Shown here piece after piece: positions 55,701 through 60,558 of a DNA stretch of 64,000 bases (position 1 is its first letter; each line of letters begins with the position of its first letter). The notes beneath the pieces are model-generated. The model was given only the letters and a program-made list of their open reading frames with translations, made no database searches and had not been told where the DNA came from. The stretch is taken from the NCBI RefSeq assembly GCF_001194135.2, contig NC_069001.1:39666541-39730540 (forward strand). The letters are read 5' to 3'. This stretch comes from Octopus bimaculoides (lineage: Eukaryota). The translations under genes and the position numbers were made by a program.

Positions 55701-58700
55701 TATTTACTATTTATAGATGATGCAGATCAGGCAATATCTTGAATTCCATATTTTACCCAATTAAAATCAAAAGTGCTCAGTTAAATATCAAAATATTAGA
55801 ATTTCCCTTCATTTAAAAATGTTTATTTTTTTTTATAAAAAAGAAATTTATAAAAATATGAATTTGAAAATACAAATAAAACTGTAGAACAAAGCTCTTA
55901 TCTGTAATAATAAGCTTCTGAATCTAATTATATGCAACAGCATTTTTTATATTCGTTAGTCTTCAGTAGAAACCTCATTAGATTATTTCTCAAATATTTT
56001 CTTTTACAGATTTAAACAGAATTTTATTATTTCAAATTAATGACTTCATTATTAAAATTTGCATCATTAATCAGGTTTTTGTGACATAAAAAGATAAGTT
56101 CTGACTGAATTAATTATAAAAGGATGATCCTTTAATATCATTCAAGATTAAAACTAATGAGTATTAAGGCAAGCATGTAACTAGAGATTATTTAAACCTA
56201 AAAAAAAAATGCAGTGATTACAGGTATTATTGTTAGCATTTTCCGATTGAATTGCATTTTATTTCTGACCAGGTCTCAACTAGAGACCTATTATTATTAT
56301 TATTATTATTATTATTATTATTATGGTGGCAAACTGGCAGAATCATTAGCTCAGCAGCATTTCATCTATATTTACTTTCTAAGTTCAAATTCTGTTGAAG
56401 TCAACTTTGTTTTTCATCCTTTCATAGTCAATAAAAAGAACACCAGTGAAGCACGAAGGTTGGTATAATCAACAAACACCTTTCCCCAAAGTTTCAGACC
56501 TTCTGCTTATTGTAGAAAGGATTATTATTATGATTAAGGCAGTGAGTTGGCAGAATGATTAGCCTTCAGGACAGAATGCTTAGTGGCAGTTCTTCAGAGT
56601 TAATAAAAATATGTACAAAGGATATATTGGAGTCAGCTCAATTGTATCGTCTCTGTTTAGTCTACAAGCAACTATTATCCATGTTTTACCTGAAGAGCAA
56701 TTAAACAGTAACTTTATCTTTTTGACATCGATTTCATTGAAGCATACAAACATCTCTCTTGGGTAATGCTGGGCTGTGATAGTCAAAGCAGGCCAAAGTA
56801 TCTTTGTAATTCTTTCCACAAAGAATCAGGTCAAAGATTCAATCAAGACATATTGCTCCTGTTTGACTTGTTATTTATGCAATTGTATTCCCAATATTAA
56901 CATTGTGGGAATTATCAGACATCTTATTTGATGTCCCCTGTCAATGCTGGTCCCAACAAATGTTTCCTTAAGAAAAGTATCAAATGTTAAACATTCTCTT
57001 TTGAGATATATTTTAAGAAAATGGGTTCCATCAGATTATTGGTTTGTGAAAACTAGTCACAGTGATAAATATTTGGAAGCTCTGTAAAGAAGTGTATTTT
57101 TAATAACATTAACTCCAATAAAACTAGGTTAGATGTTTAACAATAAGTATGCATGTTATGCATTTTTAAAACCTCTCAACTTAATTATATATAATTCAAT
57201 AATTAACTCCAATTATGTTACACCTTATAGATATATGATTTTACTCAAAAATCACTTTGTTGTTGTATTAATAAAAATAAACTTTCGTTTGTGATTCAAA
57301 ATAATTCTACAATAATTAGTATGTTGTTATAAAATATTTTAATTACATTTTCTGTTCATTATTTTTATTATTCCAAGTAAGTGACTTTAATGTATAAACA
57401 AAAAAGATTAAATGTTTTGATGGTGAAAGCTGGAGGTTCAAGTGAGGCAAGCTTTTTACCCATAAACACATTCATTTCTTTCCGTGTTTTTGACAAGCAG
57501 CAAGAAGCAGCTGAAAAGAAACAACTTGAAGTATGTATCTGTTGCATCTTGCCTCCCATTAGTTGCATTCTTGGTTTAGTAGCGCTCATCCTAGCGGCTG
57601 CTTGCAGTGTCAGTTTACAACTAATGAAATAGTCAATCAGCAAACAATAAAAATACTTTAAAAATCTATTTGTGAGTGTATAATTATGTGCAACGTCTTG
57701 TCTGTATGTGTGTGTGTGTGTTTGCGTGTATGTATATATCTATCTATATATACATATATATATATATATATATGAGTGTGTGTGTTTATATATATAAATA
57801 TACACATATATGTATCTATTGACAGAAGTAACAGGCTGGGAAGGATATTATTGAGCCACTTTGAACAAACAACTCAAGGAATATAAGAGTCAAAATTTTT
57901 AATGCATAACCATGAGTCCGACAAAATATATTTTAGCAGACTCATCATCACAGATTAAATATATGTGGAGGTGGCAGTGGTGGTGGTCATTGTTGTGTGT
58001 CTCCATTGTTTATGATATACCCAGCTATATATTCCTCTGTAGCAGAGAAAATATATTCTCAAGGGCCTGATGAGTCCTTTTTTTATATAACTTTGTGGAA
58101 GTAGTGGAGACCTGTTGACAGAATTTTTTTACATAATTATGTCAGAATGTTGGGGAAATTAACAAAACATGAAGAACGGTATACAGAAGCTATAACCATA
58201 TATAGTTTATTAGTTTATGTTCTGAGTTCAAGTCAACCAATCCAATAATGACCCTTACTCTTTCAGGCCCATATTTTGACGTATGGAGTATAGAGCTGTT
58301 GACATAACAATATCAGCTGTTGTTTACATCAGTTCGTCCTAACATTAACCGTCATATGAAATACTATTAACTATTACATATTATATAAACTAGTCACAGT
58401 AGATTTTTGATTTAGTTTTGTGATTACTTGAGAATTATGTTGGTTTGTTGGTTGCAAATTCCTCATTCAACAGTAAAAGTTTTTATTTCTCACCAGCTTT
58501 ATTAGACTCAGTCACAGAGCAGCACTCTCTGCTACTGTAACTGTAGCCACTATTTAACACATGCATGCATATATCACACACACACACACACACACACATA
58601 TATAGACACGTGTATATGTCTGTATGTATGTATGAATGAATGAATGGATAAGGAAGCTGTGAAGTTTGGATCTCTAAAGAGAGGTCTTGAATTATTGAAA

Positions 58701-60558: not shown

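Follow-up and report, generated by a model that had tools for sequence, protein, structure and literature searches.

The window analysed here is a stretch of 64,000 nucleotides (nt) from the genome of Octopus bimaculoides (NCBI RefSeq assembly GCF_001194135.2, contig NC_069001.1, positions 39,666,541 to 39,730,540 of the forward strand), and all coordinates given below count from its first letter. It carries part of a calcium channel alpha-1 gene, in which two similar 30-nt elements, called A and B, follow the exon for the end of segment S6 of domain II (the IIS6 exon), at the start of the linker between domains II and III (the II-III linker). Judged by similarity, the host gene is of the Cav2 type (N/P/Q/R-type). 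When joined to the exons upstream, the IIS6 exon scores 303, 297 and 288 bits against human Cav2.1, Cav2.2 and Cav2.3, respectively, versus 267 bits against Cav1.2 and at most 178 bits against Cav3. The exons from IS1 to IIS6 are collinear on the + strand over 31.7–55.1 kb and include the AID (beta-subunit binding) motif, and a 12-residue motif used for the Cav2 assignment is present as well. The exon chain was traced with a guide protein, the matches themselves being computed from the window. The IIS6 exon could be aligned to IIS6 of human Cav2.1, Cav2.2 and Cav2.3, and its 3' end reads GTA CGG CAA GAG/gtgagt, in phase 0. An earlier reading of this DNA, made from the letters alone (the sequence-only reading), had assigned the gene to Cav2 and the two elements to the beginning of its II-III linker. 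Both are supported, the former by the Cav2.1, Cav2.2 and Cav2.3 scores ranking ahead of Cav1.

A and B (Table 1) are identical at 24 of 30 bases. Each is preceded by AG and followed by the donor GTATGTATC, and both run from phase 0 to phase 0. The identity, the phases and the donor had been described in the sequence-only reading and were found at the same positions. Both have the form of a cassette microexon (no longer than 30 nt, canonical AG/GT, a length that is a multiple of three) and the reading frame is kept in all four combinations, i.e. with neither, with A, with B and with A plus B. Local alignment of the flanks extends the likeness to 43 identities over 53 nt (81%), which cover the exon, the 14 nt of acceptor region before it and the 9-nt donor after it; beyond these, nothing could be aligned. 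The encoded peptides have a net charge of -1 for A (3 E, 2 K) and -2 for B. A is therefore not net neutral as had been claimed, while B indeed is the more acidic one by a single net charge. Their equal length, their equal phase and a similarity above chance show A and B to be tandem paralogues, located where the II-III linker begins, with an adjacency that depends on scaffolding across two assembly gaps. The coordinates place them 3 kb apart, as was proposed, but because the gap at 60235–60328 lies between them this spacing is only an estimate.

Table 1. Exons, splice signals, assembly gaps and splice junctions in the window; a slash marks an exon border.
Feature	Position	Strand	Sequence	Remarks
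IIS6 exon	55043..55142	+		End of segment IIS6 and first 12 linker residues; phase 0 end at GAG/gtgagt
Assembly gap 1	55348..55511	.		Intronic, within (TA)n microsatellite
Acceptor region of A	57487..57500	+	TTTTTGACAAGCAG	10/14 positions match the acceptor region of B; tandem AAG-CAG acceptor
Candidate microexon A	57501..57530	+	CAAGAAGCAGCTGAAAAGAAACAACTTGAA	30 nt, 10 residues; intact paralogue of B
Donor of A	57531..57539	+	GTATGTATC	Same as donor of B; unchanged in organisms C and F
Assembly gap 2	60235..60328	.		Intronic, 200 nt upstream of the acceptor of B, beside (TATG)n/(TA)n run
Acceptor region of B	60515..60528	+	TTTCTAATAACCAG	
Microexon B	60529..60558	+	GAGGAAGCTGCTGAAAAGGAAAAACTTGCA	30 nt, 10 residues; exon proven by RNA contig
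Donor of B	60559..60567	+	GTATGTATC	Use shown by RNA contig match ending at 60558
Junction, B only	55142>60529	+	GGCAAGAG/GAGGAAGCTGC	Seen in X27 RNA contig
Junction, entry into A	55142>57501	+	GGCAAGAG/CAAGAAGCAGC	Predicted from sequence
Junction, A+B form	57530>60529	+	AACTTGAA/GAGGAAGCTGC	Predicted from sequence
Junction, A only	57530>next exon	+	AACTTGAA/AGAATGGACGA	Predicted from sequence
Junction, neither	55142>next exon	+	GGCAAGAG/AGAATGGACGA	Predicted from sequence

That the pair is an artefact of chance likeness, of a dispersed repeat or of an assembly error around the gaps is hardly credible. A degenerate 39-mer spanning both copies matches only A and B in the window, with 0 matches expected (100 shuffles), and the next-best 30-mer on either strand of the 64 kb reaches only 19/30 against A and 21/30 against B, so a chance match was rejected. 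In whole-genome contigs of the same species, A is found on one contig of 1234 nt, which has the depth of a single copy (55.9) and does not differ from the window at any base of 57300–57680, and B on one 276-nt contig (60343–60618), likewise with 0 differences. Both elements are thus reproduced base for base in independent genomic assemblies; the pair is found in two other species too, and B is confirmed by mRNA (see below). A dispersed repeat, which the sequence-only reading had named as a way to refute its proposal, was rejected as well, given the single-copy contig depth over A and B, even at 80% likeness, and a count of only two copies in the 64 kb. The possibility that A is an allelic duplicate of B was likewise rejected, in view of the 20% divergence and the unalignable flanks. 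The one point in favour of an artefact is that the block bearing A (55512–60234, 4.7 kb) has a gap on each side, neither of which was seen bridged. For gap 2, no bridging short-read contig was seen, and one contig stops at 60234 with 55 extra letters reaching into the gap; this gap touches neither exon A or B nor the reading frame.

Transcript evidence was obtained for B. A search with a 181-nt stretch around B in RNA run X27, from the same organism, gave a 625-nt contig (depth 6.1) matching 60527–60558. On the 5' side of B this contig reads CAGAGGAGGAGCAAGAAGGAGTACGGCAAG, which is window 55111–55140, with the AG at 60527–60528 standing for 55141–55142. On the 3' side of 60558 it continues with AGAATGGACGAAATTGAAAAAGATCTTTGC (RMDEIEKDLC), an exon that is absent from the window and lies beyond 64000. 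Therefore, the transcript was spliced from 55142 to 60529 and from 60558 to the next exon, which makes B a real exon and shows A to be skipped. With its junctions and genomic structure confirmed, B is a genuine exon of the octopus Cav2 gene. The 55142>60529 junction in this mRNA contig spans both gaps and so also confirms in which order and orientation the IIS6 exon and B lie.

According to Table 1 of Dunn et al. 2018 (Sci Rep; PMC5818475), molluscan Cav2 genes have a splice site in the proximal II-III linker, with the insert 'DDL' in Aplysia, 18 residues in Crassostrea and the ten-residue peptide of B in every Octopus bimaculoides Cav2 model except one; the vertebrate equivalent is placed 'very near to e18a'. 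The octopus peptide in this table is the product of exon B, so both B and a form without it are already annotated. In molluscs, this site is thus known as a hotspot of splicing. The inserts of Aplysia, Crassostrea and octopus are unrelated in sequence and length. This molluscan cassette agrees with exon B in its peptide and in its position right after IIS6, present in most models and missing from one. The paper differs from the present analysis in being based on database models, without genomic structure and without the second copy A. According to the sequence-only reading, gene predictors normally miss exons this small; this is incorrect for B, which is present in most published octopus models. 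B is thus already known; what is new is its unannotated twin A, the use of which is unproven.

The intron in which both elements lie can be compared with other animals. Cav2 fragments of the gastropods Elysia, Aplysia, Littorina and Bulinus read AAEEEQEEEEAV-RREEMEKEMAEQF, which aligns to the octopus ...EGVRQE followed directly by RMDEIEKDL..., and no counterpart of the A or B peptide is found in these fragments. Therefore, the octopus form free of the insert represents the ancestral architecture. In insects, many genomic open reading frames break off after AAEEEQEEEDKE, where the next residue is a V encoded by GT. In P0010, P0011, P0015, P0023 and others, an intron lies 12 residues after ELT and the next exon begins with KQQQELEKEMEALQ. 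A mollusc-like genomic contig (L001; Logan SRR23372229, 4656–5750) contains a compact Cav2 locus that reads AAEEEADEEEEK/gt after IIS6 and has an ordinary next exon ~430 nt downstream (NNKEEQSQLDMREQF...PMVNICPPSPQNN), and no microexon could be recognised between these two exons. As insects and L001 share the intron position, the intron is old and the microexons are a lineage-specific addition inside it; by this comparison, the post-IIS6 intron predates the mollusc/arthropod split.

With regard to the splice signals, the donor common to A and B is sub-optimal, being GTATGT with an A instead of a G at position -1, whereas the neighbouring constitutive exons have GTAAGT or GTGAGT. The pyrimidine tract scores 0.68 for A versus 0.59 for B. 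The splice signals of A are at least as good as those of B. Tandem acceptors of the NAGNAG type are present at both elements (57495–57500 and 60526–60531): A is preceded by AAG-CAG, and at B the acceptor CAG runs into GAG, the first three bases of the exon. They could add or drop one residue; in the observed transcript, the CAG of B is used as acceptor.

Both regions could be aligned to genomic contigs from two related species (organisms C and F), which are nearly identical to each other. Over 57300–57675, around A, 14 substitutions and five indel events separate them from the window. The 100 nt with A at their centre contain a single event, versus 18 in the other 276 nt (Fisher p=0.02; p=0.08 for substitutions only). 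The 34 nt upstream and 36 nt downstream of A are invariant in organisms C and F, with events at ~7% in the surroundings. Within A, a C>A change at 57522 turns codon 8 from CAA (Gln) into AAA (Lys), which is the codon of B, and the AG, the GT and the open reading frame are kept. The Gln at this position is probably the derived state, and A and B are identical at 25 of 30 bases in organisms C and F. Over 60384–60618, around B, a genomic contig of organism C shows 0 events in 136 nt versus five in 99 nt, all five upstream of 60483 (p=0.012), with B and its surroundings identical. The search in relatives called for by the sequence-only reading thus succeeded in close relatives (A in organisms C and F, B in organism C) and gave no equivalent in gastropod Cav2.

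Taken together, these results lead us to lean towards the explanation that a cassette microexon of the octopus lineage originated within an ancient intron and then underwent tandem duplication, with B serving as a spacer and A being rarely used. The ancient phase-0 intron after the IIS6 exon, in a position shared by insects and other molluscs, would have gained the 30-nt cassette in the octopus lineage, and the tandem duplication would have come later. Selection would have kept A, which would be why only the exon and the splice signals can still be aligned between A and B. B itself may act as a helical spacer of ten residues (about 2.8 turns or 15 Angstrom), lengthening the acidic helix that continues domain II S6 below the gate. 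Such a spacer would shift the register and the distance of the conserved downstream RMDEIEK... linker segment. By analogy of position only, this shift could tune inactivation or current density, as does exon 18a in mammalian Cav2.2. Transmitter release is triggered by Cav2 channels, and post-transcriptional diversification of neuronal proteins is a known trait of cephalopods; doubling a microexon right behind the pore-lining S6 would be a compact way to vary gating. It would also provide an example of a cassette that is confined to one lineage, originates within an old intron and then gains a copy.

Several points weigh against this explanation. The function as a helical spacer is pure inference. 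The conservation test is weak, the species being close and mutually non-independent. The sole interspecies change in A is non-synonymous, and one change per 30 nt is the neutral expectation at ~4% divergence, i.e. no excess conservation. The placement of A's block in the intron depends wholly on scaffolding. Whereas the skipping of A was observed directly in RNA, that of B is known only from a single annotated model, cited in PMC5818475, in which gene prediction could have overlooked the microexon. Searches of the literature with peptide strings and by topic found no mention of the peptide of A or of such an element. Finally, X27 expresses the B-only form, and no contig or read containing A was obtained from eight RNA data sets (raw reads of X24 and the Logan assemblies of X27, X35, X30, X25, X26, X28 and X36) searched with 57380–57660 or 57420–57620, a negative of low power given that B was found in one of four runs, at a contig depth of 6, and that Logan contigs drop minor variants. 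Of the isoforms proposed in the sequence-only reading (neither, A, B and A+B), B is therefore seen in RNA and the form with neither exists as an annotated model (PMC5818475), while A and A+B were not encountered in these data sets. Likewise, the proposed junction check recovered 55142>60529 in the X27 contig and nothing containing A.

The gene is almost unexpressed in the raw RNA runs X24, X49 and X50, which gave one read in total; in the raw RNA, this single read covers ~55042–55142, i.e. the IIS6 exon. Matching RNA contigs to the IIS6 exon alone returned none, although the word index places the exon in those runs and the X27 contig contains it. Negatives from RNA contig matching on this gene are thus unreliable. 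When a 10-kb stretch was matched instead, microsatellite contigs dominated and no usable joints were obtained.

These observations bear on the possibility that A is a silent relic, i.e. a duplicate ignored by the spliceosome, with only B being of importance. Its similarity to B and its local conservation would then stem from a fairly recent or small duplication, from gene conversion or from regulation of B or the IIS6 exon by this intronic sequence. We regard this as quite possible, if somewhat short of probable. It agrees with the missing A contigs and reads, with the only observed transcript skipping A, with published octopus isoforms that hold the B peptide only and with a single interspecies change in A that is non-synonymous and at the neutral rate. 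However, a similarity limited to the exon and its splice signals, next to an unalignable intron, is the pattern of an old duplicate under selection. Moreover, A has kept an intact AG, GT and open reading frame with signals that match those of B, a proven exon, in quality, its immediate flanks are invariant in organisms C and F, and the RNA search was of low power. The odds are about even that A is not dead DNA but a rare or cell-type-specific alternative spacer that takes the place of B or comes in addition to it.

If A is used at all, the question is in which combination. That A and B are both used, so that in octopus neurons the helix below the domain II gate comes in as many as four versions (+0, +10 in two charge flavours and +20 residues), seems unlikely at present. 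If true, this four-version helix would be a lineage-specific splicing dial, made by duplication of a microexon, that tunes channel gating or coupling. More doubtful still is a mutually exclusive pair, in which each transcript bearing an insert carries exactly one of the two, chosen by cell type. The same length, phase and donor in a tandem arrangement are the classic signature of such pairs, the gene family has them (e37a/e37b and the octopus IVS2 pair, PMC5818475), and the observed transcript indeed has B without A. On the other hand, use of A was not detected in any of the eight RNA data sets, which leaves one partner of the supposed pair unseen in RNA. Because the A+B form keeps the frame, exclusion would not be enforced by nonsense-mediated decay, and an intron of ~3 kb between A and B makes steric exclusion impossible, in agreement with the sequence-only reading. 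In addition, a search for intronic complementarity of the docking/selector type found none beyond the self-complementarity of AT microsatellites, with one nominal z of -2.1 in microsatellite-rich flanks.

Compared with known systems, A and B resemble the e37a/e37b and molluscan IVS2 pairs (the latter listed for octopus in PMC5818475) in being tandem duplicates of equal length and phase with similar sequence. Those pairs are obligate, one exon always being present, and encode structured channel parts, whereas A and B can both be absent and A+B remains in frame. The parallel with exon 18a of mammalian Cacna1b (Cav2.2), drawn in the sequence-only reading, holds for position: each is a frame-preserving cassette of a Cav2 channel, located in the proximal part of the II-III linker. 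It does not extend to sequence, as there is no homology, and exon 18a differs in its size (21 residues or 63 nt versus 30 nt), in lying in another intron and in not being duplicated. In Cav2.2, exon 18a modulates inactivation and current density, and Rbfox2 is a known regulator of it. A and B also share several features with the bilaterian neural microexon programme (SRRM4/eMIC, ~3–30 nt), namely their size of 30 nt, frame preservation, a neuronal host gene and the modification of a surface or linker helix. A UGC close upstream of the 3' splice site is the hallmark of SRRM4-dependent microexons; here A and B differ, with no TGC motif within 40 nt upstream of either.

Other collections were searched for relatives of the insert. 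An exact-pattern scan of metagenome contigs for A- or B-like sequence gave no match. A 40-residue linker query against the protein collection gave 26 candidates, none of them significant, and this collection, which returned only proteins of fewer than 1000 residues, yielded no cephalopod Cav2 fragments over the II-III linker. The unannotated twin exon A is now flagged for targeted junction searches, for which the predicted junctions of Table 1 can be used.

Two further observations concern the channel gene upstream of the linker. A transcript-derived protein of 467 residues in Logan (P0226) is 89% identical to the Cav2 of the window from the N-terminus through the I-II linker. It probably belongs to another cephalopod and stops before domain II, so it is uninformative on the II-III linker. 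The exon preceding IIS6 ends with AAC T/gtatcc (window 53837–53845), and GTATCC is an unusually weak donor for an exon that is expected to be constitutive.

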